Source: Trichosphaerium sp. ATCC 40318
Lineage: Eukaryota > Protista > Tubulinea
Assembly: GCA_038496445.1 (NCBI GenBank)
Contig: JALMLS010000577.1
Span: 310,001-374,000 of the forward strand
Length of the DNA stretch: 64,000 nucleotides
Direction of reading: 5' to 3'
The notes under the pieces are model-generated. The model was not told the origin of the DNA. It did not search any database and worked only from the letters and a program-made list of their open reading frames with translations. Below are positions 2,194-60,825 of this stretch, one piece after another. The translations under genes were made by a program, and so were the position numbers. The first letter of the stretch is position 1. Each line of letters starts with the position of its first letter.

Positions 2194-3366
2194 CTACCAC
2201 TGATGGATTGTGGCATTAACAGCTTTCTTTACATCATCTGACACAGCCGTCTTTGTAAGGTGTATATTACTAACACCTATAAGTGCAAGTACCCCTTCAT
2301 CTGTTACCTTGGTGTAAAGGAGATCAATTGTATGAACACCAGCCAATGCCTTTACACTTTCATCTGTTACTTTTGTACGTCGCAAGTTTATACAATGAAC
2401 TCCAGCAAGAGCGGTTACACCGTCATCGCTTACCTTAGTATAATTGAGGTTTATAGTATGAACACCAGCAAGTGCCTTAACACCTTCATCAGTTACCTTT
2501 GTGTCATTGAGATTGATAGTATGAACACCGGCCAATGCCTTTACACTATCAGTTACTTTTGTACGTCTCAAGTTTATAGAGTAGACTCCAGCGAGAGCGC
2601 TTACATCTTCGACTTGTGTAAAAGATAAGTCAATCGTATGAACACCAGCAAGATGCATCAGTTGAGAACCACTTATTTTTGTACGTGACAAGTTAATCGT
2701 ATGAACTCCAGAAAGTGCTGCTAACTCTGTTACCCGTGTGTTAGATAAATCTATTGTATGGACTCCAGATATATGTTTTAAGTGTTGATCACGTATTTTG
2801 GTACTTGAAAGGTTGATGTCATGAACGCCAGACAAGTACTTTAGACCCCAACCACTAAGTTTTGTTGAAGACAAGCTAATAGTATGAACACCGGACAAGT
2901 GTTTTAGTCCTTTATCTACTATCATGCCACGTGACAAGTCAACGTGTTTTACACCTTCAATATACTTTAAAGCTTCTAAGGCTTTATCGTATTTAAGAAA
3001 CTTGAGGTTTATTTTAAGTCTCGTGTTCTTAAGTACGCCTGGCATTGATGACAGATTTGAAACCATTGACACTCTGGTTAGATTTGCTCTTTTAAACCCA
3101 ATAATGTTATGAATAATAGATGAGAGTGTTAGACAACAAGCTACAACGGTGAAGCGCGTTTTATCGGTTGTTTTCTCCAAAAGCATTGCTAATAGTTCTG
3201 GCGGGAGATCCACAAGGCGTGTGGGTTCATTTTCGTATCTATTGCGCGGTTTTAGCAATCAAGAGTTTATAAAGATGTATCGTCAATACTGACCTCGCTG
3301 TTGACTCCATTTTCGTTTGGTAGTGTTGAAGTCTTCAAATGTTAACAAGAAAGTGCTTGACGACAT
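2194..3366 (-). CDS. F-box + leucine-rich repeat protein (LAGVHTIxLxxTxVTDEGVKA-type repeats)
   Basis: ORF 2194..3258 has an F-box-like LVDLPPELL motif and ~12 LRRs. Probable first exon from ATG 3366 (MSSSTFLLTF...) with a GT-AG intron at ~3293-3239. Confidence 0.8.
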
Positions 3367-4182: not shown

Positions 4183-6691
4183 TTAAATCTTATTCATGGG
4201 CGTTTCTGTAGTAGACACACTTGTATTTGCAGAGGAAGGAGTCATTTTGGTACTTGCCATATTCCAAATAGGTCGGAAATAGCTTAAAATAAGATTCCTG
4301 AACGATCTACGAATTAAATTAAAAAAAGAACAATAAAAGAATAAAGGGTTTTTGCTTATTTTTAGTTGTAGTATCACGTGCTTTGCAAATAAGAAACCTA
4401 TGAATAGCACAATTCCAGCGCCTTTATAAATGTTAGTTATATCACGTAAAAAAGAGTACTAACCTCCAATGCATAAGATAAAGATGATAGTGCCAGTAAC
4501 GTTTAAAAAGTCTTGTTGAAAACAGATATCAATATTGTTAGGGTTTTCAATGATGCACGCCTCATGATCAACATCCGTAACATCAATTTGCTCATCAGCC
4601 CATCCACGATATCTACGAATCCATATAAATGCATTTTCTTGAAATGAGAAGACAAAACATGCAAAGGAAGGAAGTAAAAGTAAAAAAAAATTAGTGAGAA
4701 TAAAATGATGTTTAGATCTTTGTTCTACAAGCGCCTGTAAAAAAAATAATCGTACGCCATTATGTATAACATTACACCAAAATATATAGTTATATGAGCA
4801 ATTGCTATATTCCTAGTCTGGTTCCTACTCTTGTTACTTGTACCAACATCCGGTTGCTAAATAATTAGTTAGTGTCATGTATTCTCAAGTCTGTTACGCA
4901 CAGTATAGAGGTGATATATCAAGTATATAAAGCACAATACTGCAATTAATGTTGATGGAATAAGAGGAATGCCAAAAAAAAGTAGCCAATGTGCCCAATA
5001 TGGATTTAGCGATACTGCAACAAAGTCTTATAAAAAGAACGTTTGTAAGGTTTAATCTTATTATACCGAAGCAAAACGAGAATCCTGGTAAGGCTTCTAT
5101 TAGCCCTGAAACAAGTGCGATGAATGTAATGATACCAGGTATTCCCCATAAAGAGCAATGCACACTCTGAAATATGATTAAAACAACAAAGTCATTATCC
5201 AAAATGAACAAAAAAAAAAAAGAGACTGATTGCTTACTACTCTGTAATATAGTGGGAGCTTTCCAGTTATGTTCTTTACTCCTCTATGAGTTACATAAGC
5301 AACGTTAATAGCCATTAGAACCCATGATATGATGAGCTGATTAGCAGCAAATATCAGAACGACACCTTTTGTGGTTTAGTTTAAATAAAGACAATTGCAA
5401 AGCTGTTACCTTGAATTGTACACGGAATATGCCATGCATGTGCCATACGTGCATTGTTCTCACATGTTATAAAACTGGGAGCTATGTTACCAATAAAAAC
5501 GCAGAATCCAGTGGCAAAGGCATCAGCTGTAATAACTGGAAAGAACTGTGTTTGAAACTTTCTGTATCTATTGATTGTTTTTAAGTATTTACCTACCATT
5601 CCACTAAACAGCGTACTTGTACGTACTTTGTACTTCCCATGAACATCAAAAAACTTAACAAAGATAAGACCATACCAATTATACTCGAGGTCAATGAGAA
5701 AACATCCATCAACCTCTGTGATGAGGCTACAAACCAACATTAGCAAACAAGCACATTGTTGTTTCTCATACTTGAAAAAGCTGGTGGCGGACAAGAAAAA
5801 CAAGGTGCTCCATCTAAGGATGTTAAGTACTTTGATATTTAAATATTTATTATAGTACTGTGTGTTATTTCAGAAGTCTTCGGATCAGGGAAAAGTCTTG
5901 GAGGGAAACATGTCAATGTACTAACAACTTGTGCTACCAACAATAATCAGTAAGATTCGAAATGTATAAATTAGTTGTACTTGAGTTGGTTGATGTTTCA
6001 TTACACGTCTGTGATACCATTGTTTCATCCTGGCAATCAGGGAGTACCAGATCGCTTGACAGAGATAGGAAAGGTTCACAGTTTATAGTGAGAGCCTCGC
6101 AAGTATCAACACAAGGAAGTGCTATGCCATTTGGAAGCGAATCATTACAAAGATTGAAACCACTTTGACATGCAAACAAAACAATAAAATTCTTGCACGT
6201 GGTCCCGCCAGCAAGATCAAGTATGTCTATTCCTTCTAGTTCTACTTCAATATCACTATTTTTAAGATAAATCAGAGCTCCAAAACTCAGAGAAGGTTCG
6301 AGATTTCGAAAATAATTTCAATGAAAGTGACTATATTAGGTCGTTGGGGGAAAGGTGGTCTTACGCTTGGATACTTGATTGTGTTTCGTTTTCGGGCAGA
6401 TAAAATGGCGTCTGGTCAGAAACAATGGAATCGCATCTATACAACTGTTTTAACAATAAAATACCCGTAAAAGGAAGTATAGAGCTGCTGCTAAGCCGAG
6501 AGGTGGTTGGGACTTCCTTTGGAGATAAAACTATTAAATAAACGCTCTGAGCGTTTTAGTTTATAACAAAGATAAGCTACGCGCCTGTGTGGAGTCCCTG
6601 TTACGTTATGTACGTAAGGAGTGCAGTTTCCTTTTACTGTGACACCAATACAACAAAGAACCAATAAGACGTATTGAGATGCCGTCGCCAT
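4183..6691 (-). CDS. Frizzled/Smoothened-like seven-transmembrane receptor (multi-exon)
   Basis: Signal peptide MATASQYVLLVLCCIG; CRD-like Cys spacing (FACQSGFNLC...LPCVDTCEALTINC...LPDC); CFSCPPPAF linker; several hydrophobic exons (e.g. HCSLWGIPGIITFIAL). Confidence 0.65.
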
Positions 6692-7063: not shown

Positions 7064-7975
7064 TTATAACACTCGAGAACCTTCAAGCAATGTAGGGTAC
7101 ATCTGGCGTCCATTTTTGTAAAACACGTGTTCAAAACTTCCTGATGAGTATGTATAGTGATCACTCATTGATTTCTTAAACCAACCTTCTTCTTTTCCAT
7201 TGACATAAGCACCAGATATTAGCACGTTCCCAAAACGATCGTATACTATATACTGACCATGAAGCTTACCCTTGTCATAATTGCTTGCTATACTGAGCAC
7301 ATTTCTTTTACGGTGATGATACTTTCTATACGGACCATGTAAGACACCATTGACATACATTCTAGTCTCCACAACTTGTTTATTCCCATCAAAAATACTC
7401 TTAAACTGACCTTCCATTTTACCATTCTTATAAAAACACGTGTAAGAAATGCCTTGTTGTTGGAATTGTTTATACTCTCCTTCTAGCTTACCGTCAACAT
7501 AAAAGCAGTGTCTTTGTAGTCGACCATTGTTGTACCATCTCTTTACTTCGCCATGAAGTAATCCGTTCCTAAAAAAGCACTTTCTCTTTAGCAAAGGCTT
7601 CGAGGGCTTAATATATTGACCGTTATGGCCCCTACGTTTGTAAGGATTACAACCATAGTAAGCTATATTCTCTCCTTCACGGACTCCATTGACATAAAAG
7701 CAAGTTTCTTTCAACACGCCATTAGTGTACCAACTTTTGTATGATCCTACCATTTTTCCTTCGTCAAATGAACACGTGACACAATGTCCAATCCATTTGC
7801 CATGTTTCTCCAAGTTAAAAGTAAATCTACTTGTTACCGCAGCTTGATAACAAAGTAGCGGCCACAATACGTATACCTCTGCGGAAAGGTCTATAATCTG
7901 GTGTAATAATTCGGTAGGTAACTTAAATATCCCATCATTACATAATCTGGCCTCTACAGTACAATTTTGGGACAT
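7064..7975 (-). CDS. F-box-like N-terminus + MORN-variant (MORN_2/YwqK-like) repeat protein, single ORF
   Basis: IFKLPTELLHQII motif followed by repeats such as YVNGVREG and WYNNGRL. Paralog of 52208..53068. Confidence 0.75.
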   Translation of the reverse strand: MSQNCTVEARLCNDGIFKLPTELLHQIIDLSAEVYVLWPLLCYQAAVTSRFTFNLEKHGKWIGHCVTCSFDEGKMVGSYKSWYTNGVLKETCFYVNGVREGENIAYYGCNPYKRRGHNGQYIKPSKPLLKRKCFFRNGLLHGEVKRWYNNGRLQRHCFYVDGKLEGEYKQFQQQGISYTCFYKNGKMEGQFKSIFDGNKQVVETRMYVNGVLHGPYRKYHHRKRNVLSIASNYDKGKLHGQYIVYDRFGNVLISGAYVNGKEEGWFKKSMSDHYTYSSGSFEHVFYKNGRQMYPTLLEGSRVL

Positions 7976-9117: not shown

Positions 9118-10320
9118 ATGCTTCCTATTTCAACACGTTATAAAATAGACAACGTCGCACGCGATAATTTGTTGCGGCTACCTACGGAGATATTAACGCA
9201 TATTTTGCTTCAAACATCATACAAATCACGATTTGCAGCTTGTCAAACCTGTCGTTTATTCGCTTCTATTGTTCACGACGTTATCGGATACACCGCTATC
9301 AGGGTTGAAACTGTAGACCAAGTAAAATCAGTTGTAAAACATCGTGGGATTCTGAAAAACACCTGGATAGACCTTAGCTCATGTGATTTTGACGAAACCA
9401 GCATCAAACAATTTGCTGGAGTTCATACTATAGACCTCGAATGCGCTACAGTAACTGACGAAGGCATTAAAGCACTTGCTGGCGTTCATGCTATTGTACT
9501 TGAATCCACTTCAGTAACTGACGAAGGCATTAAAGCACTTGCTGGCGTTCATACTATTTTCCTCGATCATACTTCAGTAACAGGCGAAGGCGTAAAAGCA
9601 CTTGCTGGCGTTCATACTATTTACCTCAATAACACAAAAGTAACAGATGAAGGTGTTAAAGCACTTGCTGGAGTTCATACTATTTACCTCGATAACACTT
9701 CAGTAACAGATGAAGGTGTCAAACCACTTGCTGGCGTTCATACTATTTACCTCAATAACACAAAGGTAACTGACGAAAGCATTAAAGCACTTGCTGGCGT
9801 TCATACTATTAGCCTCAGTAACACTTCAGTAACAGATGAAGGCGTAAAAGCACTTTCTGGCGTTCATAAAATTAATCTCAATAACACTTCAATAACAGAT
9901 GAAGGCGTTAAAGCACTTTCTGGTGTTCATAGTATTTACCTTGCCGGTACTAAAGTAACTGATGAAGGTGTCAAAACTCTTGCAGGAGTTCATTATATCA
10001 GCCTTCATCGTACCGTAGTGACAGATGAAGGTGTTAAAGCACTTGCTGGCGTTCATAGTATTTACCTCAATAGCACTTTAGTAACAGATGAAGGTGTCAA
10101 AGCACTTGCTGGCGTTCATACTATTTACCTCAATAGCACTTCAGTAACAGATGAAGGGGTTAAAGCACTTGTTGGCGTTCATACTATTTACCTCAATTAT
10201 ACTTCAGTAACCAATGAAGGCATCAAAGCGCTTGTTGGTACAAAACATATAAACGTAATTGAAACTGTAGTATCAAGAGAACTAGAAAAAGAATTAAAAG
10301 GAACTCGTATTTATAAATAA
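9118..10320 (+). CDS. F-box + 21-aa leucine-rich repeat protein, intronless
   Basis: LLRLPTEILTHIL F-box motif and ~13 tandem 63-bp repeats of AGVHTIxLxxTxVTDEGVKAL. Confidence 0.85.
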   Translation: MLPISTRYKIDNVARDNLLRLPTEILTHILLQTSYKSRFAACQTCRLFASIVHDVIGYTAIRVETVDQVKSVVKHRGILKNTWIDLSSCDFDETSIKQFAGVHTIDLECATVTDEGIKALAGVHAIVLESTSVTDEGIKALAGVHTIFLDHTSVTGEGVKALAGVHTIYLNNTKVTDEGVKALAGVHTIYLDNTSVTDEGVKPLAGVHTIYLNNTKVTDESIKALAGVHTISLSNTSVTDEGVKALSGVHKINLNNTSITDEGVKALSGVHSIYLAGTKVTDEGVKTLAGVHYISLHRTVVTDEGVKALAGVHSIYLNSTLVTDEGVKALAGVHTIYLNSTSVTDEGVKALVGVHTIYLNYTSVTNEGIKALVGTKHINVIETVVSRELEKELKGTRIYK

Positions 10321-10906: not shown

Positions 10907-13900
10907 TCAATTGTTTCGACTCTTCAAAACGCTTCTAAAATCGGTAACAGGGGCTTCATCACCCTTTTTATCATCAGTAGATCCATTTCTACTATTACGT
11001 GATCCAACCGGTTTTAAACCAGCCCTGTAAGAATAACGATAAGAGTGGGAACAAAACTTCGTGGGAATTCTTTGAAAAAAAAAAAAGCCAAACGGCAAGA
11101 CGTACTTAAAATCAATTGGTCCAAAACCAGATTTAGGTCTTCCTCCAAGTCCAGGTTTCTTTAAATGTGCTTTAAAGTCAAAAGTACCAGACGTTGTAGT
11201 TTCTGTGCCAGGGTTTGCAGACGAATTTGTTTTTCTTAATTTGGGAAAGCCACCTCCAAGCATTGCATGCATTCCCATTCCTGGAGGTCGTGCTGATCCT
11301 GCACGTGCTACACCAGGTCTAAAAAATTAATCAACACGTTAAATTTTCGTAACCACGTGATCAAAAAAAACTCTGTGTTTTCTTACAACGCCCAGCAATC
11401 AAAAGTAACTTTTTTTTTTGAGACTTACGAAGTTCCACGGCCTGATCCACGGAGAGACGCTTTGCCTGGAAAAAGATTAATTTCAAACATTAAGCTACCG
11501 TATTTATTATATTTTGGTGAAGTTACTTTTTTTTCCACAAGACACAACGTGGCAGAAATAAATTTTCAAAAAAAAAACAGGAATAAATGAAGAAAATTAC
11601 GAACGTGCTATGATTCCGCCCAATCCTCCTATACCACCACCCATACGTGGTACAATCCTTGGTTTTGGAGTATCATTATCATCATCATCTGGAGGAGCTG
11701 ATTTTATGACTGCTTTATCCTCAATCTCGCCTTGTTTTGTTAGTTTAATACTAATCGGTTTTTCTAAAAAGTTACTCACCCTTTGATATCATAAACGCTC
11801 GTTTTTTAGCAAGCTCTTCTCCAGGTCTTTTCGATTTTGGTTTTCTCTTCATCTCCCTAGATGCTCTCAAACCCCTAGTTGATAATTTACGGACATATTT
11901 GAGTCTAGGTTTATTTGAGATTGGGAGTGGTGGGAGGGAGGCTAAGGAACAAAAATAAGCAAAAAAAAAAAAGCTCTAAAAATAAAGTATTTCTAACATT
12001 CTGGTTCCTTTGGTTCTTCTTCACCGTTTTCTGAAGGTTTCTCGCCTTCAATAGCATCTTTAGGGCCTTCAGTAGCTTCTCCATCTTCTTGAGCTGGCTC
12101 TTCAGTCTTGTCCTTATTCAAAATTAAATTTTATTTCTTTGAAGCTTCAACGTACTCCTTCCTCAGTATCCTTTTGTTCTGAGGCTTCATCACCTTCTGT
12201 ATCAGCAACCACCTTTGGTTCTTCGATCTTATCAGTATCTTCACCTTCGCCATCGCCTTCGCCTTGGTCTTCGTTCCCTTCTGCATCTTGTGGAACTTCT
12301 GCAGGTTCTTCAGGTTCTTTAGGTTCCTTAGGCTCGGCGCCTTGAGCTTGTTCTTCTGCAGCTAGTCTTTGCTTGTTTTCTTCAGCAACTCTTTCAGCTT
12401 CTTTTTGTTCCTCCTCTACTCGTAGACGTTCCTTCTCTTCTTCCTCAATTCGAAGTTTCTCAGCTGCTTCTGCTTCGAGTCGATCCGCTGCTTCTGCTTC
12501 AGCTGCAGCCTTTTCTTCTTCTTCCTTTCTAAGTCGCTCCTCTTCTTCAAGTCGAAGTTTTTCAGCTGCTTCAGCTGCTGCCTTTGCTTCAGCTTCTTTT
12601 TGTTCCTGCTCAACTCTGATACGCTCCTTTTCTTCCTCCTCAAGTCTGAGTCGTTCCTTCTCTTCTTCTTCAAGTCGAAGTTTTTCAGCTGCTTCAGCTG
12701 CTGCCTTTGCTTCAGCTTCTTTTTGTTCCTGCTCAACTCTGATACGTTCCTTTTCTTCCTCCTCAAGTCTGAGTCGTTCCTTCTCTTCTTCTTCAAGGCG
12801 AAGTTTCTCAGCGGCTTCAGCCTCTATCCTTGCTTTTTCTGCAGCTGCCTCCTCTTCTTCAATTCTCAACCTCTCAGCTTCAGCTTCTAGCCTGGCTTTT
12901 TCTTCCTCTGCAAGTCTTTGTCTTTCTTTCTCTTCTTCCTCAAGTCGAAGTTTCTCAGCTGCTTCTGCTTCAGCTGCAGCCTTTTCTTCTTCCTCCTTTC
13001 GAACTCGTTCCTCTTCTTCAAGTCGAAGTTTTTCAGCTGCTTCAGCTGCTGCTTTTTCTTCTTCTTGTCTTAAACGTTCAGCTTCAGCAGCTTTTTCTTC
13101 TTCTTCAAGTCGAAGTTTCTCAGCTGCTTCAGCTTCAATCCTTGCCTTCTCTTCAGCTTCAACTCTGGCTTTCTCAGCTGCTTCTTCGGCAGCTTTCTCT
13201 TCTTGTCGGATTCTTTCAGCTTCAGCTTCAGCCTCTAGCCTTGCTTTTTCTGCAGCTGCCTCCTCTTCTTCAATTCTTAACCTCTCAGCTTCTAGCCTGG
13301 CTTGTTCCTCCTCTGCAAGTCTTTGTCTTTCTAGCTCTTCTTCCTCAAGTCGAAGTTTCTCAGCTGCTTCTGCTTCAGCAGCCTTTTCTTCTTCCTCCTT
13401 TCGAACTCGTTCCTCTTCTTCGGCTCTAAGCTTTTCCGCTGCTTCTTCTTGCTCAACTCTGATACGCTCCTTTTCTACCTCCTCAAGTCTGAGTCGTTCC
13501 TTCTCTTCTTCTTCAAGGCGAAGTTTCTCAGCGGCTTCAGCTTCGGCAATCCTTGCCTTCTCTTCAGCTTCAACTCTAGCTTTCTCAGCTGCTTCTTCGG
13601 CAGCTTTCTCTTCTTGTCGGATTCTTTCAGCTTCAGCTTCAGCCTTTTGACGCTTTGCTTCTCGTTCAGCAAAAAGAGCAGCTTCTCTTTCTAATCGAAG
13701 CATCTCTTCTTCTTCTTTTGCAATCCTTTGGCGCTCACGCTCTTTTTCTTTCTCTTCGGCTAGTTTCTGTTCTCTTGATTCTTCTTCAAGACGTTCCTTT
13801 TCAGCTGCTAGTGAAGATTGTATTTGTGCAAGACGCTCACTCTTGACTTTTTGTGCTTTAAGCTAAACAAACAATCAGTATTTAAGTCCTTTGTTTGTTT

Positions 13901-15092
13901 TCTTTTCAAAATTTTATGCATAAGATTTGAGACAGTTGTATGCTTGATGCTGAAGGTAAAAATGCAAAATAACTCCAAATAAATATGTATGACATCATCA
14001 AAAAGGGATATGATAAACAATAAATAAAAAAACCGTTGACGCTGGAACGTTTCTTCTGCATTCCAAAAAAACAAAACTAGAAGTTTTTTTGTGACAAAAA
14101 AAATAAATCAGTAAAAGAAGTCGTTTATAATAGATCATACCGCCTTCTTTTCTTCCTCAAGTTCGACCTGAACTCTATCTCTCTCTTCTTGTTGCTTCCT
14201 TGCTTCATCTATATCTATAATGAATTTTTCTGAAGGCATACTACTTTGCGAATCTAATCACGTGAGTTAACAATGGCTTTGTAGTCACAACAACATTTCG
14301 ATGTAATAATTAAATAAATAAATTAAAATAAATTACCATGAGCTTCATTATCATCTAATACGCCAATAGGCTTGAAAGACTCGCGTTCAAGAGTTGCTGT
14401 AAGACCTCGTGTCATTTGTTTAGGTACAGAGCTCAATACTGACTTTGTACGCTCTTTAATAACCCTATTATCCTTTGGTTCTGTATTACCATCTCCTGTT
14501 CTTAATTCTAATGCATCTTTCTTTAAAAACAAAGGTTATCGAAGGGAGCACTGTAATTATCGAATGAAAAAAAAAAAAAAACGTTTTTTTTTTCGATAAC
14601 AAAGTATAAACACGTGTTGTTTAAAGACTTTCTACTCCTTTGATGTTTTTTCTGAGTCACAATGAAGGTTCAGAAATTGTCACTTACTGTTTCTTTGTGC
14701 CTTTTCTTTTTTTTAAATGCTTTACTACTACACCCACGTGATTAGTAATGCACTACTTATATAGAGCGTGATCCAAAGATGATGCTTAGATAATCTTTTT
14801 TTTTTCAAAAAACCAAAAACCAAATACGCACTTTTCAGCCTCTACACTTCTGAATTTACTCTCCAGATCATCCTCGTCTTCAAATTTCGCATAAGGGTTT
14901 GATTTCTTTGGTGTCTTACTAGGTGATGAAAGAACATCGTCCTACAGAAACCAAAACACTGTCAAAACAACTACACTTTAAAAAAAACCCCTAAAATATT
15001 ACCGAGTGGCGGGCTCCAGAGAGCAGTTTCTGTTTTTCACTTACATGTGCATCTCCCGCTTTATTGCCCTTTTTAGAGGAGCAACAACCCAT
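10907..15092 (-). CDS. Predicted N-acylated protein with long E/A/K/R helical rod and C-terminal DFRxxL/WH2-like motifs (multi-exon)
   Basis: ATG 15092 gives MGCCSSKKG. ORF 12147..13703 is EAKR-rich with internal DNA repeats. Last exons encode GGGFPKLRKT, FDFKAHLKK, IDFKAGLKP (spliced) and TDFRSVLKSR. Confidence 0.65.
12370..13650 (-). repeat. Intragenic degenerate tandem repeats encoding AEAAEKLRLEEEEKER units
   Basis: Visible near-identical blocks, e.g. 12540-12670 vs 12660-12790, and 13130-13230 vs 13550-13645. Confidence 0.8.
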
Positions 15093-18183: not shown

Positions 18184-19110
18184 GTGCAAACGATTCAACT
18201 TGGCTTAATCTCCCTACGCGCTTCGTTGATGCTGATAGCGACAACTAAGCTATCCCACGCTGTTTCTAAGGTATTAGCTACGCCGAACAAGCGTTATGCG
18301 CACGTGACAACACAAAACAGATCCAAAGTACAAGTTTGCTTTGCTTCAGCTATATACAGAACAAAGTTGGACCTGTTTGAAGAAAATAAAGATTTAACGG
18401 CATGCGCTGTATCTCTTTATAATAACACAAAGAACAGGCTAGTAAAAGAACATAATGAGACTTTAAACACTTATAAAGGCGTCACACTTGGGTCAGCTAT
18501 AAACAACGAACTTTTTGATGCTCAAAAAAAGTTCCTTCTTTCCGAACACCGACACATGTTTGAGGATATTCCTGCGTTTAAAACGATGCATAGATCTTTA
18601 TCACGTGAAGCTGTATCATTTGCTAGCAATGTGTATGGTATTAAAATTGAAGAAGACAAGCTTCTTTTTCCCAAAATGTATTGTTGGACATCAGTACATC
18701 TTTGTGGTAAAAGTATACACCCTATACATGTGCACGAAGATGCTATGATTAGTGGTGTTTACTATACATCAGCGCCGCCAGGTTCAAGTAATTTGGAGTT
18801 CTATAATCCAGTCGGTTATTATCCTTACTCAGTAGATTCTCAAGGTAAAAATCCAAAGACGCCACATCCGGCATTTGATGGACGAGTTATTGTTAAACCT
18901 GAGGAAGGCTTGCTAGTTATGTTTCCGTCATATATGCCTCACGCTGTGAAGGAGCGAGCACAAACAAACCATGATATTAATGTTGATAGAACAGAAAAAG
19001 AAGGAGATGAGCTATACAGAGTATCCTTCTCATTTAATATTCTCGGCAGTTGGATGAGTGTTTCTTCATCAAGCTTGTCAATACCAACAATCACTAACCA
19101 GAAAATATAA
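18184..19110 (+). CDS. 2OG-Fe(II) oxygenase, TIGR02466/2OG-FeII_Oxy_5-like
   Basis: HPIHVHEDAMISGVYY, LEFYNP, PEEGLLVMFPSYMPHAV and RVSFSFNI motifs. 5' end uncertain. Confidence 0.8.
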   Translation: MQTIQLGLISLRASLMLIATTKLSHAVSKVLATPNKRYAHVTTQNRSKVQVCFASAIYRTKLDLFEENKDLTACAVSLYNNTKNRLVKEHNETLNTYKGVTLGSAINNELFDAQKKFLLSEHRHMFEDIPAFKTMHRSLSREAVSFASNVYGIKIEEDKLLFPKMYCWTSVHLCGKSIHPIHVHEDAMISGVYYTSAPPGSSNLEFYNPVGYYPYSVDSQGKNPKTPHPAFDGRVIVKPEEGLLVMFPSYMPHAVKERAQTNHDINVDRTEKEGDELYRVSFSFNILGSWMSVSSSSLSIPTITNQKI

Positions 19111-44181: not shown

Positions 44182-45264
44182 ATGAACCAAGACACCGCAT
44201 ACTTTGAAGAAATACCAGTTGAAATCGCTTTAATGATACTACAATATCTTTCGCATGTGCATATAGACGTAATAGCGCATACATCAAAGCTATTTACTAA
44301 AATAGCAATAAGATACTTGGGATACAAAAAAAAAACAAAAAAAGTGAGAATAAAAACGAGGAAACAACTCAAAAAATTGTTCAAGAACGCACCGCTACTG
44401 ATAAAAAACTGTGAGATTATAATAGAATATGAAGGATTGAAACAAAAAGACTTGAAAAAGTATCTCTCAGAAGTGTACATCCTAAACATTTCGTCAAGAG
44501 AAATTGACACGTGGGATTTTTCGAAGATTAACATCACTCACGGTATCGCCTTTAACAAAGTTACTGTCACTGAAGAGCTACTAAAACAGGTATATGGATT
44601 ACATGAAATAAGACTGCTAAGATGTTTTTTACGTTTAAAATGCATGAAACAATTGACAGGGTCTAAAACTCTTGACCTGACAGGTTCTTATCTATATAAT
44701 CTTGGTAAAAACGATCACATCCGTATTAGAACATTTGACAAAGGTGTTAAGCTGTTATCAGGAGTCCATACAATAAACCTATCCCACACCAGCGTAACTG
44801 ATAAAGGTGTAAAAGCATTGGCAGGTGTTCATACAATATATCTCTCATCCACTAATGTGACAGATGCAAGTGTTGCTAGATTAGCAGGTGTTTATTCAAT
44901 TGATCTTTCACGTACTGCAGTTACAGATAAGGGTATTAAAGCACTTTCGGGAGTTCATACAATAAACCTATCTCGCACTAGTGTAACTGATGAAGGTTTA
45001 AAAGCATTAGCAGGTGTTCATACAATAGATCTCTCATACACTAGAGTGACAGATGAAGGTCTCAAATCATTGGTAGGCGTTCACACCATTGATCTATCAG
45101 AGGATGAAATTTCTAATGAAGGTGCAAAAGCATTGGCAGGTGTTCACACCATTAATCTATCATGTACTAAAGTGACTGATCCAAATATCAACGCAGTAGT
45201 TAGAGCCCATTCGATACAGCTAGACTTTTGCCCTTTGGAACTACCTAGCGACCAGTTAAGTTAA
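44182..45264 (+). CDS. F-box + LRR protein (LAGVHT type), intronless
   Basis: FEEIPVEIALMILQYL F-box and ~7 21-aa repeats. Confidence 0.85.
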   Translation: MNQDTAYFEEIPVEIALMILQYLSHVHIDVIAHTSKLFTKIAIRYLGYKKKTKKVRIKTRKQLKKLFKNAPLLIKNCEIIIEYEGLKQKDLKKYLSEVYILNISSREIDTWDFSKINITHGIAFNKVTVTEELLKQVYGLHEIRLLRCFLRLKCMKQLTGSKTLDLTGSYLYNLGKNDHIRIRTFDKGVKLLSGVHTINLSHTSVTDKGVKALAGVHTIYLSSTNVTDASVARLAGVYSIDLSRTAVTDKGIKALSGVHTINLSRTSVTDEGLKALAGVHTIDLSYTRVTDEGLKSLVGVHTIDLSEDEISNEGAKALAGVHTINLSCTKVTDPNINAVVRAHSIQLDFCPLELPSDQLS

Positions 45265-50146: not shown

Positions 50147-52121
50147 GTGAAAAGTATAAAATGTCCCAATTCTAGGTAAAATGTCCCCACTTTTCAATTT
50201 TTAAAATGCCTCGCAGAAGTGCCGCAAAGGCTAAAAACATGGCAGAGGCCACAAAGGAAGTACTTTATAAACTAAAGAAGCGTAAACCTTCACAAACACT
50301 CTCAATTCGTCAAATTTGCATCACAGTGGCTAAAAAACACTGTGTTAAATCAGAATCACTACGAAAGCGTGTTCAGAGGGCATTTGCAAAGGAGAATTCG
50401 GAGAATTTCAAATCTCATGGCAACCAACTTTTTACGGATTTTGAAGAAGAAATGTTGGTTGGCTACTGTTTGAGTTTTAGCGGGCGTCATATGCCTCTAT
50501 CACGTGCAGCCTTGATATCTATGGCACAAAGTCTGTACAAGAAGAAGAAGTTGACCAGTATGGAAGCTTGGTGTGATGGCTTCACTGAAAGACACAATAT
50601 TGAACTCAAAGCCACTGTTTCGAAGACAATTCGCCGCTGCCGTGTATCTCCTGTCACTCTGCCACGTGTAGAAGCTTGGTGTGATGGTTTTGAGCGATTC
50701 TCAGAGATGTATTATATGAACCCAGATTTGATGTTCAATTGTGACGAAAAGTTGATAACAGCATCAAGTGACAAGTATCAACACATTACCTTTCAAGATA
50801 GAACGATGAAAATTGCTGGGCGGCTGAACAATAACACAAGCAGCCCTCTCACGTTGATTCCGTTTGTTTCAGCCTCTGGACGCGTACTGGTGTCAATTTA
50901 TATAATGGCAGCAAAAAACAAAGGTGATGAACAAAAAGTGCATCAAATGACAGTACCCAGACCAACAAATACCCGCTCTTCATGGCCTAGATACTATATA
51001 TTTCATGGTAAAGGGTATGTGACCAACGAAATTTGGCCAAAAATTCTTGATGTGTTCTTAAAGCACTTGAAAATTTTTCAAGGGGACAGGGTTGCATTTT
51101 TATTCCTTGATAGATTGGCCAGCCACATTAAAACAGAATCGTTACAAAAATGCCTTGAACAGCATGTACACACTATCACATGGGTGCCTCATACCTCACA
51201 TTTCAGGCAACCCTTAGATGACAAGCCATTTGCTACCCTAGCTCAGGCATATAAATTAAACAGGAAAATTACAATTGAAAGTGGCACAGAGATCAAACAT
51301 AAAACACAACGTTATGACATAATGGCTGTTGCAGCTGCAGAGACCAAAGCACTGTCTCCCAAAATCTTAAAATCGGCATGGAAGTCCGTGGGCATTGTAC
51401 CCTACAACAGAAAGTTGATCTTAAATCATGCTTCAAAAAATGTAGGGGTCCAACCTAAACAATCACCTTCCTTCATCACTGATACTGCTAGAAAAGCCAA
51501 AAACGCTATGGATGAGCTATACAGCCACAGCAATCAAGTAAATGCCCTAACAATCGGTCCAATGACAGTACCAAAAGGGGATGCTTATATTGCTACCCAA
51601 ATGGTTGAATTAGCAAAAAAAAAAAAGATAGATAAAGAACAAGAAATTAAACACAAGGCAGAGCTAAGGCAACTCAAGAGAGATGCTAAACAAAAAAAAA
51701 TTGAGGAGGAGAATGTTTGTAGAGAGGAGACAAGACAGAAAAAAGAAAAAAAAAAACAGGAAAAAAAACTTGCCGCTGCTAAGAAGAAGTACAAAAATGA
51801 ATGTGAGACCTGTCAGATATGTGGCGAGCGCTTATGGAGGGGAGGATCTACGTGGGTGTGGTGTGAAGTCTGTGATCAGTATGGGTCATGCCCATGCTGC
51901 TTAAAAGAATTTGATGGAAAAAAAATGGTTGAAATGCACGAAGAAGAATGTACAGGAGGGCGATCTTTTGGTAACTGGTACTCAACGCAAATGGACACAT
52001 CATATTAAAATCAGAATAAAAAAGTATTTTTTTTAAGAGCGTAGCATCAATTTTTTGTTCAAAAAAAGTGTTGAAAAGTGGGGACATTTTACCTGTGGTT
52101 GGGACATTTTATACTTTTCAC
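50147..52121 (+). mobile_element. pogo-superfamily (Fot/Passer-like, DD35D) DNA transposon, apparently complete
   Basis: ~50-bp TIRs GTGAAAAGTATAAAATGTCCCAA..AGGTAAAATGTCCCCACTTTTCAA at both ends, TA on both sides (50145-6, 52122-3), single transposase ORF. Confidence 0.9.
50206..52008 (+). CDS. DDE_1 (pogo/CENP-B-like) transposase with C-terminal Cys-rich finger
   Basis: HTH region, FNCDE, LFLDRLASH, QPLD with 35 residues between the 2nd and 3rd D, lysine-rich coil, then CxxCxxC...CxxC...CxCC. Confidence 0.9.
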   Translation: MPRRSAAKAKNMAEATKEVLYKLKKRKPSQTLSIRQICITVAKKHCVKSESLRKRVQRAFAKENSENFKSHGNQLFTDFEEEMLVGYCLSFSGRHMPLSRAALISMAQSLYKKKKLTSMEAWCDGFTERHNIELKATVSKTIRRCRVSPVTLPRVEAWCDGFERFSEMYYMNPDLMFNCDEKLITASSDKYQHITFQDRTMKIAGRLNNNTSSPLTLIPFVSASGRVLVSIYIMAAKNKGDEQKVHQMTVPRPTNTRSSWPRYYIFHGKGYVTNEIWPKILDVFLKHLKIFQGDRVAFLFLDRLASHIKTESLQKCLEQHVHTITWVPHTSHFRQPLDDKPFATLAQAYKLNRKITIESGTEIKHKTQRYDIMAVAAAETKALSPKILKSAWKSVGIVPYNRKLILNHASKNVGVQPKQSPSFITDTARKAKNAMDELYSHSNQVNALTIGPMTVPKGDAYIATQMVELAKKKKIDKEQEIKHKAELRQLKRDAKQKKIEEENVCREETRQKKEKKKQEKKLAAAKKKYKNECETCQICGERLWRGGSTWVWCEVCDQYGSCPCCLKEFDGKKMVEMHEEECTGGRSFGNWYSTQMDTSY

Positions 52122-52207: not shown

Positions 52208-53068
52208 ATGGGCGAGTATGTAATCGTACGTTTTGACACTCTTTTGAGTCGTACACTGTCTTTTTTCGTTTTCTCATTTACTCTTCGATTTAAACAGTCA
52301 AACGCATGCGCCCGAGTGACTCCTACGCTTGAGTATCTTCCTCCTGAAATACAACTTGATATTATGGATATTTCTGTGGAGGCTTATATTAAATGGCCTT
52401 TACTTTGTAAACGTACAGCGATGAGTACAAGATTTGATCGTTTCCTTAAAAAACATGGAAAATGGAAAAGCTTCAAAAACGATTGTTTAGTTGAACAATG
52501 CTACTGGATTAATGGTCGTGCTGATGGTCCTTATATTAACTGGTATGATGATGGTGTTCTTTTTATAAAATGCCACCATGTCGATGATAAACTCGAAGGT
52601 GATTACAAGCAATGGTATCACAATGGAAAACTGGAAATTTTATGTGAATATAAAAAAGGTAAAAGAGAAGGTGTTTATAAAGAGTTCTACTCAACAGGTG
52701 AGATATTCAGAGAGTGTATTTATATAAAAGGTATTAAGCAAGGAATGGAGAAAAAGTGGTATTTTGATGGTAATATTGATACTGTAAGTCATTATAAAGA
52801 TGATAAAAGACATGGTGAGTATCAGACTTGGTTTGGTGGTAAAATCGTTTTAAAGTGTTTTTATGTTAATGGTAAGAGAGAAGGATTGTTTCGTAGGTTT
52901 GATAATAGTGGTACTATAAGAGAAGAGTGTTGTTATATAAATGATTTGGCTGAAGGTGAACATAAAACGTGGTATGGGAATGGACAGTTAAGTACAATTT
53001 CTTTTTACAATAAGAATTGTCAACAAGGAGAGGTTAAGAAGTGGCTACCTAACGGAGATTTATGCTAA
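52208..53068 (+). CDS. F-box-like + MORN-variant repeat protein
   Basis: LEYLPPEIQLDI..WPLLC..KHGKW shared with 7064..7975; WYxNG/GKREG repeats. A short in-frame intron near the start is possible. Confidence 0.75.
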   Translation: MGEYVIVRFDTLLSRTLSFFVFSFTLRFKQSNACARVTPTLEYLPPEIQLDIMDISVEAYIKWPLLCKRTAMSTRFDRFLKKHGKWKSFKNDCLVEQCYWINGRADGPYINWYDDGVLFIKCHHVDDKLEGDYKQWYHNGKLEILCEYKKGKREGVYKEFYSTGEIFRECIYIKGIKQGMEKKWYFDGNIDTVSHYKDDKRHGEYQTWFGGKIVLKCFYVNGKREGLFRRFDNSGTIREECCYINDLAEGEHKTWYGNGQLSTISFYNKNCQQGEVKKWLPNGDLC

Positions 53069-54256: not shown

Positions 54257-56005
54257 ATGCATCATTTGTCACTGGTACTATCCCTTCTCGCTCTTGTAGC
54301 ACTTTGTGCAGTACGTATCTTAGTTTAAAGCGAGAAAACAGTTAAAAACTAGTATAACAAAGTGCTTACTCTTCTTTAGGGTCAAACAAACGACCCTTGC
54401 GTCAACGCTTGTTTACCAGACTTTGGTGCTTGTACAGCTAGCCCTGTAAGATGTAGAATTATTCTCATCACGTGTATCACAGCTTGTAATGACGACCCAA
54501 CTGACATGCCGACCGATATGCCAACCGACATGCCTACGGATAACCCAACCGATATGCCTACCGACATGCCTACAGACAACCCAACTGACATGCCTACCGA
54601 TATGCCTACAGACAACCCAACTCTCGCGTGTTTGGGTGAATGCCGTGAACGAGTCCAGGCATGTTTACAAGATGCGTCCACCACTGACGAAAGAAGACAA
54701 TGTGTCGATGATTACAGGCAATGCCAAACCGATTGTAACCCAACATCAACTCCACGGCCAACTGAAGAACCTACTTGCAGAGATATGTGCATTCAAGCGT
54801 TCAGAGAGTGTAGCGAAAGCAGAGACAACGGACAGGATTGCCGAGAAGTATTGCGAATGTGTTTAACTGATGAATGCGATATTGATCTTCCAACAAACCG
54901 ACCAACAGACGAGCCACCTTGTGGACAACCATGTATCGAAGAATTCAGAGCTTGTAACGAAAACGATGGAGATGCTGAAGAATGCCGCCAAGCTTTAAGA
55001 GAGTGTCTACAACGCGAGTGCAATCTCCCAACAGACATGCCGACTGATATGCCTACAGATGACCCAACAGATATGCCTACGGACGAACCAACAGACGAGC
55101 CAACAGAGAACCCAATAGCTGGATGCTTCAGGGAGTGCCGCACTATATTCCAAATGTGTATGGATGACGCAACCACTGGCGCTGAAAGGATAGCATGTTC
55201 ACAATCCTTCAGAGAATGCCAACAGGATTGTAACCCAACATCAACTCCACGACCAACAGAAGAGCCTTCTTGTAGAGAAATGTGTATGGAAGTGTTCAGA
55301 GAGTGTAACGAAAACGATGGAGACATTCAAGAGTGTCGTGACGCTCTAAGAGAATGTCTTGTAGAAGAATGCGATATCGATATTCCTACACCACGACCAA
55401 CTGAAGAGCCTACTTGCAGAGAAATGTGTATTCAAACATTCAGGGAGTGTACTGAAGACGGCAATGGACAAGACTGCGGAGAAGTATTAAGAATGTGTCT
55501 TGCTGACGAATGCGATATAACCCTTCCAACAAGACCTACAAATTGTAGACAAATGTGCTTCGCTTCACACAGAGAATGCAGATTAAACGGAGGAGACGCT
55601 GAAGAATGCAATCTAGCTCTGAGAGAATGTCTCACAGAAGAATGTGATATCGATCTTCCAACAGACAGACCAACAGACTTACCTACAGACATGCCTACGG
55701 ACTTGCCTACTGATATGCCAACAGATCCTGTAGACACGTCAGATGGTCAAGTAGTTGATTGTTTACAAGACTGTAATGCAGACTACAGGGAATGCGCTGA
55801 TTCGGACGATATCCCTGTGTCTGAATGTAGAGAAGAAAGACGTAATTGTCGCGCAAGCTGCACTGATAGACCTACAGGAACACCTCGACCAACAAACCCA
55901 CCATCTTGCAGAAGACTGTGTGTTGATGCCTTCAGGGAATGCATGTCCAATGGAGTAGCAAGTCAATGTGTTCCAGCGCTCAGAGCATGTAATGACGAGT
56001 GTTAG
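54257..56005 (+). CDS. Secreted protein of tandem 6-Cys modules separated by PTDM/PTxxP linkers (2 exons)
   Basis: Signal peptide exon MHHLSLVLSLLALVALCA, intron ~54311-54379, then ~10 modules C-x3-C-x6-C-x(5-11)-C-x6-C-x3/4-C. Confidence 0.8.
54494..54621 (+). repeat. 12-bp tandem repeat (PTDM/PTDN) within CDS; recurs at ~55028-55112 and ~55658-55728
   Basis: CCAACTGACATG-like units. Confidence 0.85.
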
Positions 56006-56279: not shown

Positions 56280-58493
56280 ATGAAGGGTCTTATTATATTG
56301 CTCGTAACATTATCTCTTGCTTTGCCAGCGTTGCTGGTTAATCCAGGGATAAAAATGAGTCTAACTCAAAAAGGTGACTACCACGTGTTTTAACTACATC
56401 TAACCACGTGATTCTTAGGGTTAACATACGCAAAAGATGTTGGTATTGTAGTATTGAAGGAAAAAGTATCTACAATCACAGTAGCTGACATTAGGTACGC
56501 GAACAAAGCGAAAACAAAGCACTCAAAGAATATTCTGCTTAGTTTTCGCATTTTCTGTTTTTGACATTTTGAAGCTCTTTTCTAACCGTCTTTTGAAGCG
56601 GATCTACCCATGCACCTGTTATCGGTACTATAGACTATACTCTGAGTGATGTACGTCCGCTTTTAACCAACTGCTGTTTTGAAAAACGAACAAAACTGAA
56701 ACAAACTCTAGGTTGTCATTAAAGATTTAACGTTCCCTACAACTGCCGCCAAGATTGTTCCAAATTCTGCTATTGAAGTTGAAGTGCACGTGGAAAATAA
56801 ACCGTATTTCTCAAAGTCTGAAAATATATTAGATCAGGCGCTGGTGCTTCTATTACTCTCAACTGGAGTTACCGCGAACATAGCTGGCCTCATATCAAAG
56901 GACATGGTAAGTTCTATGTCTTTAAAAACACCTTTTAATCCCTTTGTATAGGCTCTGCTGATATAACAGTCAGTGGTACATCTATTAGCGTTGTTACAAA
57001 AGTATCAGAGACCGGTGGAAAAGCGATTGTATGCCAACGAACAAAGTAACGAGTTTACTAATGGTTTGTCTCCGTTTAGGTTTCTAGCTTTACTTCTAGT
57101 GTATCAATTGGTGATTTAAAAATAACTGTACACGGTGGACCAAGGTACTAACAAATTGAGAAATCACACGTGATTTGTACAACGTGATTCTTACTGTTCC
57201 TAGTTGGTTGTATGACCTATTTATCAATCTCTTCAAGTCAAAAATTAAAGACGCAGCTGAGAAAGCGATTGAGTCTGCGATTGATAAGCAAAAGCCTCTA
57301 TTAGATGGAGTCTTCGCTAAAATACCTAACTCAGTTGAAATAGGTACGTTCGAAATCACGTGACATGGGTGACAAGAACTTATTTGTTTTTTAAGCCAAC
57401 GAAGCCGAGCTGGACTTTGCTTTGACTGCTGCTCCAATAATAGGAGCAAGCTCTCTTACTCTTCCTCTAAGCGCTCAATGGATTGCTTTGATACCTAAAA
57501 AAGCCAGTGCACCTGTTGTAGCTTCTGCTGTACCTACCTTGGGAACAACTAAAATGTTAGAGGTACCATTATTTTGTGTACATGATGAACAGTCGATATT
57601 CACTTTTCTTAGATTGCTGCTGCTCCATCTGTAATCGATGGCGCAAGCTGGACGTTTTGGTATGAAGGAAAGATGGCATACACCATCACTCCTTCCCGTA
57701 AGTGATTTCCAGAAAATCCAAAAAAAATCCAGAAAATAATCCGATTAAAACTAACTATCTTCTACTAACAGAGGTTCCTCCTTCTTCTCCAATTAAACTA
57801 AACACAACCAACTTCCGCGGATATGTTCCTTTGCTTTACCAGAAGTACCCAAACAAGGGAATAGATGTAAGTCCTTTTTTATCAGAATACTCGTGCTTAT
57901 TGTTATTATCTAGGTTAAAATTACAGCTGATGCTGCTCCAGTAGCTACTGTAAATGCATCGGGAATTGAGGTGAAGGGTACACTTGACCTTGAAGTGTAC
58001 GGAAAATAATAGAAGGAACGGTTTTTGATGTTTTCATAGATTAGTTGAAGTCGACTCCAAATCTGTCCCAGCTTTTACTCTAAGCGTAGCAATTGTCGCT
58101 ACAGCAACCGTACGCATGCTTTTTACAATTAGTAAGTTATAATTTTTCGCTCACGTGGGTTTTTTACAGGCAAAATTGAGTGACACGAATGTTTATTTGA
58201 ACATGACTTACTTCAGCAGTTCTACTACTTTGAAGAAGTCTTACATCGGTACATTTGACCCAACAACACTCGAGACTGTTATCAAATTTCTAATGAATGG
58301 TGTACTATTCCCTTACGCAAACAGTTACGCCAACAAAGGATTTACTCTTCCTGTAATTAAAGGTACAGTTTCTTTCTCTGCTTTTTTCCTTCCATCTCAT
58401 TTTGTTATTCTAGGCGCAACACTTGTGGCACCTGTAATTGGATATGGACCTGGATACATATACGTAAGCTCAGATGTTCATTACACACCGTAA
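56280..58493 (+). CDS. BPI/LBP (TULIP) family lipid-binding protein, multi-exon
   Basis: Signal peptide, NPGIKMSLTQKGLTYA, WSYREHSWPHIKGHGSAD, LKITVHGGPSWLYDLFINLF, LFPYANSYANKGFTLP. Confidence 0.85.
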
Positions 58494-58671
58494 TACTGAA
58501 GATTCATTTCGAAATAAACTTCGCTCTTTATCGTGTTGCGTTATTTTACGAAACTTCGGAAAAAGGCAGGAACTGTTTACGGACATATAATTCCATTCAC
58601 TTTTAGTGAAGGAACTCAGTTTGCATGCTTTTGTGACCGGTAAGATGTGTTAGGTGTTATAATCATGCATT

Positions 58672-58743
58672 GAGCTTATGGTCTAATGGCATGACGACTG
58701 TATGGCATACAGTAGGGTGGGGGTTCGATTCCCTCTAGGCTCA
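58672..58743 (+). tRNA. tRNA gene with GGC anticodon (nominally Ala) and atypical acceptor stem
   Basis: Full cloverleaf: acceptor GAGCTTA/TAGGCTC, D arm GTC..GAC, anticodon arm ACTGT-ATGGCAT-ACAGT, T arm GGGGG-TTCGATT-CCCTC, A73. Pol III A/B boxes; TTTT at ~58753. Confidence 0.75.
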
Positions 58744-58922
58744 GACATATGGTTTTACTATTAAATGCTACTATTCAGTGAAATAACACCACGGCGAAAG
58801 CGATGGCGTGAGCTTTCTTTTTGTAATACTAGGCACTTTTACGGACATAGTAGGCCTATTTCCTATTCACACGCACACTGTAAGTTCAACAATAAAAATA
58901 AACGGAAATTTATTCTTTGTTC

Positions 58923-60825
58923 TCAATTGCAAATACTTGTCGTTGTACTGAACTCGGTGAATCCATACGAGCGACCTGGTATAGTCCATGTACCACTGGA
59001 TACTATTTGTGGCATTAAAGGGGGTAATGTGTTTTGAGCTGTAAGCACAAGAGTCTTTCCATTTAGCATCATAGTTGTGGAGCCAAGAGAAGTGGCTGTT
59101 AAGAAATACTCCCTCCGAGGAGATGACTCAACACCAGTAACATCAATAGCTATATTTGAGGCACTCGGGTTTGCATACATCACAACTATGTACCCTTTAG
59201 ACTTACCACAAGCAGCATAAGCAAGAAATCCTGAGGTCTCATCTAAATAGTTTCAGGTCAGAGAACGATACAATGAAATCACGTGAGCGTTTTAGTTTAC
59301 CTGTCTTTACATTTAGTATCTTTGATCCCATTAGGCGTTTATACAGAACAGCAGTAAAGTAGTCAGGAGCAACTAGGAAACGCTAAGAAGAAAGAATAAA
59401 TAGCACCAGATACGCTAACATACCAGTATAAGGATGAGCGTTAATATCAATGATACCGAAATTACCACCAATCAAAGACCATCTTGAGTGATCCGTAACT
59501 CCTGTTACAGCGTACTGACCTAATGAAGCAATGTACCAAAACCCATTCTCAAATGAATTTATCACCTAACATAGAAGCTTAATCCTTGTTAGCAAAGAAA
59601 ACCCCAATTATAGAGAACAAGTACAACCATCAAACAGACATTTTTAGTCTGTTTTCACAAGAAAAACAACTTACACCGTTGGTTGCTGCATACGCTGAGT
59701 TTGTTTCTGTCAACAATAGCTTCATACCAGCAGGTTTACCTACAGAAAGATAAGAAGAATGAGGTTGTTAATCGTTCTCTCACCTATCTTGTTCCAAATG
59801 TCTATACAGTCCATACTATGTGCATGCAAGTCATTTTTAAGAAGACTATTGCGTAACCAATTAATATCAACCAACTGTTTTGATGATTGAGAGCCATTTC
59901 GTCCAGGATACGAATGATATGTAAATCCAGTAAGTTTACCCTTTGTTGCGTTCATAAACATAGCGACATCATTATTACATATATCAGTGCTTGGTCCATA
60001 CACAGGAGGCGTTTTTCCTTTGCCATTTTCATCAGGCCATATACTATGAACGATTTTTATGAGGGTCAAATGGTCAGCGATATTCGTTTCGATGTCAATG
60101 TGGTTTGATTCTCTTGTGAGTTCGTTACCAAGTTCAAATCCATAAATTGGTCCTATATCGTTTTCTTTTATATATTTTAAGAAGCTAATCAAGTTGTTTG
60201 TATCCCATTCTCCTACACATTTTGTAGTATTTTGGTAATGACAGTTCCTTCCATAAAGTTCGTTAAGGTCAAACAAAAATGACATTTCCGCCGATTTGGC
60301 AAACTCAACGAGCTGTTTGAATAGTGATATTGGTAGGCTCTTATCACTGTTAGGCCAAAACCCTTTAACATTATGATTTGCATTTGGTCTAAGAGAGCTT
60401 AACTTAAACAAATGGAGTGATTAGAAAAAAATATTTACCCTGTTTTATCCGTTTGGGTGAGATTGTAATAAACCCAATCTGCAGTTATACCACCCACTCG
60501 TAGTATGCCAGGACTCATTTGGCGCGTGAGATACCTAAAGTTCTCGTCTCCTAGTTTGTCTGCGTATTCGAGAAAAGAAAACATTTCCCATCTACCAAGA
60601 CAGTTAGTGCACTAATGATCGCAGGCAGCTGTCGCACCCAATACCAATGTACGAGCTAGTAGTATCAGCAACGATTGTACTAGTATCAATATGGATGGAA
60701 TCTCCACTGCATAGAGTAAAAACACTGCGTACAACTATTAATACAAACGCTAAAGAAAAACCGTTACGCACATGATTAAAGCTATAAAACACGTGAAAGA
60801 TGAATGTAACGTCATCTAAAATCAT
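58923..60825 (-). CDS. Glycoside hydrolase family 79 (heparanase/beta-glucuronidase-like), multi-exon
   Basis: SPGILRVGGITAD, GFELGNEL (acid/base), TYHSY, LLLTETNS (nucleophile), FENGFWY, PDYFTAVLYKRLMG. Start codon uncertain. Confidence 0.85.

Follow-up and report, generated by a model that had tools for sequence, protein, structure and literature searches.

Which amino acid, if any, is carried by a nuclear tRNA that has an alanine anticodon but not the alanine identity pair? This question is raised by a tRNA gene of Trichosphaerium found at positions 58672–58743 (+) of the window, by which we mean the whole 64-kb stretch of DNA that was analysed. Three synthetases ignore the anticodon: those for serine and leucine need a long variable arm, and that for alanine needs G3·U70, which was the first tRNA identity element to be experimentally validated and which is considered universal for alanine, animal mitochondria excepted. 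The gene described here has G3:C70 at this place, and its anticodon is GGC, where eukaryotic nuclear alanine sets normally have AGC (I34).

The 72-nt gene was clearly detected by the Rfam tRNA model RF00005, which matched 58672–58743 (+) with 60.3 bits (gathering threshold 29, E 1.4e-10 for the window) in an alignment spanning model positions 1–71 of 71, i.e. the full length of the tRNA family. ARAGORN called a tRNA-Ala(GGC) at 58671–58744, and Rfam detected nothing in the region besides this one tRNA gene. The covariance-model score excludes a chance origin of the cloverleaf. The folding energy by itself was not significant (z −1.06), as is usual for tRNAs. The acceptor stem consists of G1:C72, A2:U71 (58673/58741), G3:C70 (58674/58740), C4:G69, U5·G68 (58676/58738), U6:A67 and A7:U66, followed by the discriminator A73. 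Both the sequence and the ARAGORN drawing show G3 in a Watson-Crick pair with C70, not in the G·U pair of alanine identity, and U5·G68 as the sole wobble pair of the stem. The D arm is GUCU/AAUGGCA/UGAC with a U13·U22 apposition and the anticodon arm ACUGU/AUGGCAU/ACAGU, its loop (58702–58708) reading A32 U33 G34 G35 C36 A37 U38 with the anticodon at 58704–58706. These are followed by a variable loop of 5 nt (AGGGU) and a T arm GGGGG/UUCGAUU/CCCUC with G50·U64 (58719–58735). All tertiary positions are kept (U8, A14, A15:U48, G18 G19, A21, G26:A44, U33, G46, G53, T54–A58, C56 and C61), the Levitt pair being a covariant A15:U48.

The signals expected of a Pol III gene are also present. An A-box-like internal promoter, TGGTCTAATGG, is an acceptable match at 58679–58689 (tRNA positions 8–19), and the B box, GGTTCGATTCC, is a perfect consensus at 58722–58732 inside the T arm, as read from the sequence and from the RF00005 alignment. 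A TTTT run at 58753–58756, 10 nt past A73, is a candidate Pol III terminator and is followed by a second run (T5) at 58818–58822; a TATA-like TTATAAT is located upstream at 58657–58663 (−15 to −9 of the tRNA). Together, these observations bear out the description of the locus given in the earlier note, namely a complete 72-nt cloverleaf with intact A and B boxes and a downstream T4, a loop ATGGCAT with A32-U38 and anticodon GGC, and an acceptor stem with G3:C70, C4:G69, U5:G68, A2:U71 and A73 that lacks G3:U70. No sign of decay was found in the gene: all conserved nucleotides and stems are intact, and compensatory differences separate it from its nearest relatives. Judged from its sequence, 58672–58743 is a genuine tRNA gene of the Pol III type, its structure is intact and it belongs to an Ala(GGC) lineage.

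In order of position, the elements conserved in tRNA-Ala are G1-C72, G2-C71, G3·U70 and A73 (PMC9976931). The Trichosphaerium gene shares the NGC anticodon, G1:C72, A73 and the A32-U38 GGC loop with canonical or bacterial-type tRNA-Ala(GGC), but it has G3:C70 and A2:U71 where the latter has G3·U70 and G2:C71 (PMC9976931), so that its acceptor stem deviates from the conserved one at A2:U71 as well as in lacking G3:U70. Alanylation by insect, human and plant AlaRS is abolished by G3-C70, and no cytosolic exception to G3·U70 is known in any domain (PMC9976931). Because G3:C70 and A2:U71 replace G3·U70 and G2:C71, a canonical AlaRS should not charge this tRNA. The known exceptions are confined to animal mitochondria, where the Drosophila tRNA-Ala has G2·U71 together with G3-C70 (PMC9976931) and the human mt-tRNA-Ala is recognized through G5·U68 (PMC6451123). 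The gene resembles the former in its G3:C70 pair and the latter in having a wobble elsewhere in the acceptor stem (5-68). It differs from both in being nuclear, in its canonical D and T loops and in having no matching AlaRS known, and its U5·G68 is the reverse of the human mitochondrial G5·U68. Nor does the tRNA fit any other complete identity set: valine identity needs A35, glycine C35 and threonine U36 (PMC9976931), and G35 and C36 conflict with all three. On present knowledge, no synthetase would be expected to charge this tRNA well.

The reading that we tentatively prefer, while giving it somewhat less than an even chance, is that the gene encodes a structurally maintained identity-orphan tRNA, which would be transcribed but charged poorly, if at all, and which would be tolerated in the presence of normal tRNA-Ala genes. 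As an intact Pol III gene it would be transcribed and processed like any tRNA; G3:C70 and A2:U71 would then make the canonical AlaRS fail, leaving the product poorly or not aminoacylated, and the orphan would be tolerated since the normal tRNA-Ala genes do the decoding. It may also have been retained for a role that needs just the tRNA fold or a TFIIIC-bound gene. Conserved, multi-copy and well-formed tRNAs whose anticodon is at odds with the identity of their body are known in nematodes as the nev-tRNAs; their variable arm is long, and they are substrates of LeuRS, an enzyme that ignores the anticodon. Unlike these, the Trichosphaerium tRNA has a 5-nt variable loop and fits no anticodon-ignoring synthetase.

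Identity-mismatched tRNA genes that arise through single substitutions are a known eukaryotic class (Rogers and Griffiths-Jones 2014; PMC3923123), in which substitution at position 35 is the commonest route to an alloacceptor anticodon shift (PMC3923123). The gene has in common with these alloacceptor-shifted tRNAs the anticodon of one amino acid on a body without the identity for it. Moreover, its closest body, an archaeal tRNA-Val(CAC), is separated from an alanine anticodon only at position 35, and its A73 and G3:C70 fit valine. It differs from the alloacceptor-shifted tRNAs in that its loop is specifically tuned to GGC. The orphan reading thus has on its side the full-length tRNA match, the block imposed by G3-C70, the missing A35, C35 and U36, the existence of a known mismatch class and the GCY codons of one ORF, which align mostly with alanine (see below). 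Against it stand the lack of decay anywhere in the gene and the A32-U38 loop, which is relevant only to ribosomal decoding.

This loop is rare. A32 together with U38 was observed in 3/741 unique comparison tRNAs, two of which were Ala(GGC) and one Val(GAC), in agreement with the earlier note, which had linked the combination to tRNA-Ala(GGC), and the combination can be called near-specific to Ala(GGC). A32-U38 has been described for Ala and Pro tRNAs, where it tunes down anticodons of excessive binding strength (PMC5041475). From its sequence, the loop looks co-adapted with GGC or a close G34 anticodon and does not look like the context of a fresh, random anticodon mutation. This kind of tuning is of consequence only on the ribosome and so suggests that the tRNA either takes part in decoding now or descends from one that did. 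Together with the lack of decay, the tuned loop keeps alive the main rival to the orphan reading, namely that this is a working alanine tRNA.

According to this rival, which we regard as possible but unlikely, the tRNA receives alanine from an AlaRS activity that can do without G3·U70. The activity could be that of a second, organelle-type or virus-derived AlaRS or of a relaxed host enzyme, and the tRNA would decode GCC and GCU in the cytosol or, if imported, in the mitochondrion. The intact cloverleaf, the tuned GGC loop and A73 are all consistent with alanine charging, and the same type of body is found in genuine alanine tRNAs of DPANN archaea and a giant virus. The Drosophila and human mitochondrial enzymes cited above (PMC9976931; PMC6451123) give precedents for such recognition. 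These precedents do not extend to the cytosol of any domain, however, and the sole wobble of the acceptor stem is oriented opposite to the one used by the human mitochondrial enzyme. For the mitochondrial variant of this rival, canonical D and T loops would be unexpected.

The nature of the body was evaluated by comparison with prokaryotic, viral and metagenomic sequences. A scan of one prokaryotic genome per species for the D-arm and T-loop geometry, with any anticodon, returned ~100 tRNAs: Ala with CGC (30), UGC (8) or GGC (1), Gln (38), Asn (9), Val (6), Glu (5) and Trp (2). The Ala matches were mostly from DPANN archaea; those examples that were read (not the whole set) have the acceptor GGGCCGG/CCGGUCC, which contains G3·U70. 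The D arm GGTCTAATGGCATGAC is identical to that of DPANN-archaeal tRNA-Ala and tRNA-Val and of giant-virus tRNA-Ala. The closest single sequence is the archaeal-type tRNA-Val(CAC), which is identical at 56/72 positions and has the same D arm and the same T stem including G50·U64, while its acceptor departs from that of the gene only at position 5 and, through a compensatory change, at 2-71. When all 915 ARAGORN tRNA predictions in the loci fetched for comparison were ranked, the top neighbours were only Val and Ala, in the order archaeal Val(CAC), then viral and archaeal Ala; the loci had been fetched with patterns taken from this gene, so this ranking is biased. By these comparisons, the body of the 58672–58743 tRNA is of an archaeal-like Ala/Val type.

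No near-identical bacterial, archaeal, phage or viral relative was present in the collections searched. The best match among phage tRNAs was 78% over 55 nt, the matches were of other isotypes, and none was close. In IMG/VR, the exact 5′ and 3′ ends of the gene were absent, and a loose pattern combining an alanine anticodon with the T arm returned mostly bacterial-type phage tRNA-Ala(UGC) and tRNA-Cys(GCA), none of which came close in the ranking. Fourteen IMG/VR matches to a 17-mer of the anticodon arm were discarded as chance matches, none of them lying inside a tRNA. Horizontal acquisition was among the origins proposed in the earlier note; a direct or recent transfer from bacteria finds no support in these collections, in which nothing from bacteria, archaea, phages or IMG/VR comes close to the gene.

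A broader reading is that Trichosphaerium has, beside its I34-type genes, a second, archaeal- or bacterial-style set of alanine readers (GGC, UGC, CGC) that lack G3·U70 and that are nevertheless aminoacylated and used in translation. We consider such a set rather unlikely.

The next explanation is that the gene is a passive copy, left behind by DNA of foreign (e.g. giant-virus) origin or carried as cargo by a small mobile cassette; it would have no host function and would simply not have decayed yet. To our knowledge, G34 Ala tRNAs are normally absent from eukaryotes, which is consistent with a foreign source. Further support comes from JGI metagenome contigs, which were scanned with a pattern that demanded an exact D arm and T arm and left the anticodon free. 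Matches were found only on two overlapping contigs, L114 and L115, and only in Ala(GGC) and Ala(UGC) genes. These lie in tandem units, Ala(UGC)-Glu(UUC) and Ala(GGC)-Glu(CUC), at 737–1180 (−) of L114 and 4929–5262 (+) of L115. Each unit is dicistronic, with the two genes 1 nt apart, a conserved TATA-like GATATAAAAAG box ~30 nt upstream and a T9 run after the unit. Other genes of the contig code for a thymidine kinase, an ankyrin protein and an orphan that has Nucleocytoviricota as its nearest Atlas clusters; on this gene content, L114/L115 is identified as a giant-virus (Nucleocytoviricota-like) fragment. The Trichosphaerium gene shares with the viral tRNA-Ala genes the exact D arm and T arm, the 72-nt geometry, A73 and AT-rich stems, and has the G34 anticodon of a viral set that includes both G34 and U34. 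The genome of Trichosphaerium has also been reported to be rich in giant-virus DNA (PMC10521059).

The viral genes nevertheless differ from the Trichosphaerium gene in several respects. Outside the arms imposed by the pattern, 4/7 of the acceptor and none of the anticodon stem are shared. The viral acceptor is GUGAGUA/UACUUAC and keeps G3·U70, the loop has G32/C38 or U32/U38, and each tRNA-Ala is dicistronic with a tRNA-Glu. The absence of decay also speaks against a passive copy, as does the genomic context, since both immediate neighbours are spliced and of host type. The tRNA gene sits in a ~430-bp spacer between these two genes, which are convergent. Upstream, a BPI/LBP/CETP-like gene (Pfam PF02886, a weak match with E 0.003) has its last coding ORF at 58155–58493 (+) and ends ~180 nt before the tRNA. 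Downstream, a spliced GH79 glycosidase gene (PF03662, E 1.2e-14) occupies 58923–60411 (−) and is made of ORF pieces at 59740–60411, 59383–59565 and 58923–59183, of which the two 3′ pieces were assigned by inference from strand and order; its stop is 180 nt from the 3′ end of the tRNA. With such neighbours, the locus is not within an obvious viral island.

The mobile-cassette variant draws on an exact 12-bp direct repeat, TTTACGGACATA (+), of which two copies (58576–58587 and 58838–58849), 262 bp apart, bracket a 250-bp segment that contains the tRNA gene. A third exact copy is found 47 kb away at 11886–11897, giving three in 64 kb where 0.24–0.44 would be expected. Given this third copy, the repeat is probably a motif and not a target-site duplication, and the latter was rejected as the main reading; TTTACGGACATA may be a recurring short motif, perhaps a regulatory or 3′-end motif, of the Trichosphaerium genome. 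None of the three copies seems to be within a coding ORF. A near-perfect 10-bp hairpin, TTCCATTCACT/AGTGAAGGAA, was observed at 58590–58616, ~60 nt upstream of the tRNA and just past the upstream copy. On balance, we regard a passive copy as improbable. A mobile origin of another kind, the head of a SINE, had been offered by the earlier note and was not supported in the window: the gene is single-copy in the 64-kb window and its flanks are unique there, TTTT follows it at 10 nt, no shared 3′ body was seen and the cloverleaf is not degenerate. Nor did the window contain a retroelement primer-binding site complementary to the 3′ end of the tRNA.

Several other features of the window were recorded. 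Its G+C content is 37%, with a deviating region at 12001–14000 (G+C 44% vs 37% elsewhere, GC skew −0.31, AT skew −0.48) in which two long ORFs, at 12147–13703 (−) and 12373–13650 (+), have no Pfam match and which is probably a low-complexity, repeat-coding region. A 308-aa ORF at 18184–19110 (+) has a 2OG-Fe(II) oxygenase domain (PF13759, E 2e-16), and no relative of it was detected at E 1e-8 in a word-based search of a large protein collection. The 499-aa intronless ORF at 54506–56005 (+) is composed of PT(D/N/E)MPTD repeats alternating with approximately eleven Cys-rich modules (C..C....C). Its only Pfam match is the PT repeat, from which long antisense ORFs stem, and its product may be secreted or located at the cell surface. 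Intronless MORN-repeat and F-box/LRR ORFs are present at 7064–7975 (−), 52208–53068 (+), 2194–3258 (−), 9118–10320 (+) and 44182–45264 (+), in a genome that has been described as rich in introns elsewhere. These families are also common in giant viruses, and the ORFs may bear on the reported gene traffic between virus and host.

A further explanation is mischarging, in which a non-cognate synthetase (ValRS, ThrRS and GlyRS being the nearest) would load the tRNA and cause low-level substitution at GCC and GCU. The similarity to archaeal tRNA-Val(CAC), which has an identical T stem and an almost identical acceptor, favours this explanation, and so do A73 and G3:C70, found in both the Val and Gly sets, and G10:C25:G45, found in the Gly set. 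In addition, G3·U70 is an antideterminant against yeast ThrRS, so that its loss could admit this enzyme (PMC9976931). On the other side, the strongest determinants, A35 for valine, C35 for glycine and U36 for threonine, are absent, and selection would act against mistranslating an entire codon box, the more so if several gene copies contributed to it.

The meaning of GCN codons was evaluated in the window itself. Eleven ORFs contain 78 GCT, 74 GCA, 22 GCC and 13 GCG codons, GCC, the Watson-Crick codon of the tRNA, thus being rarer than GCT. One ORF allowed a comparison with homologues, a pogo/Tc5-like transposase with two relatives that are 26–29% identical, which gives the test low power: GCY codons fell opposite alanine in 6/14 of the columns where both relatives agree, above any other residue. 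This ORF, at 50206–52008 (+), is intact and encodes a 600-aa DDE transposase (PF03184, PF03221) that contains a stretch rich in lysine and has a Cys-rich tail resembling a zinc finger; the two relatives are its nearest in a set of 5.8 billion proteins. In this weak test there is no sign of a wholesale reassignment of GCY. The recoding at GCC suggested in the earlier note is not what this ORF indicates, as its GCY codons behave as alanine, and the same columns speak, weakly, against mischarging, an explanation to which we give little credence.

Finally, it is very improbable that G3·U70 is restored by RNA editing (e.g. of C70 to U) or that C70 was wrongly assembled or base-called. Turning this one C into U would indeed bring back the identity pair, and C-to-U editing of a tRNA is known for the marsupial mitochondrial tRNA-Asp (PMC9976931). 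However, A2:U71 also departs from G2:C71, so that one change does not give a canonical acceptor stem, and no precedent was found for a nuclear tRNA in which a base-paired C of a stem is edited.

If a family of well-kept nuclear genes reads alanine codons without G3·U70, this would point to one of three things: a synthetase that recognizes tRNA-Ala in a new way, mistranslation that the cell tolerates, or tRNAs that stay uncharged and serve another purpose. A true set of alanine readers without G3·U70 would be the first case of cytosolic (or nucleus-encoded and imported) alanine charging independent of this pair, or else a standing, selected ambiguity at GCN codons. If the tRNA is instead a silent or uncharged relic, it would show that identity-orphan tRNA genes can persist in the genome of a protist that trades DNA with giant viruses.
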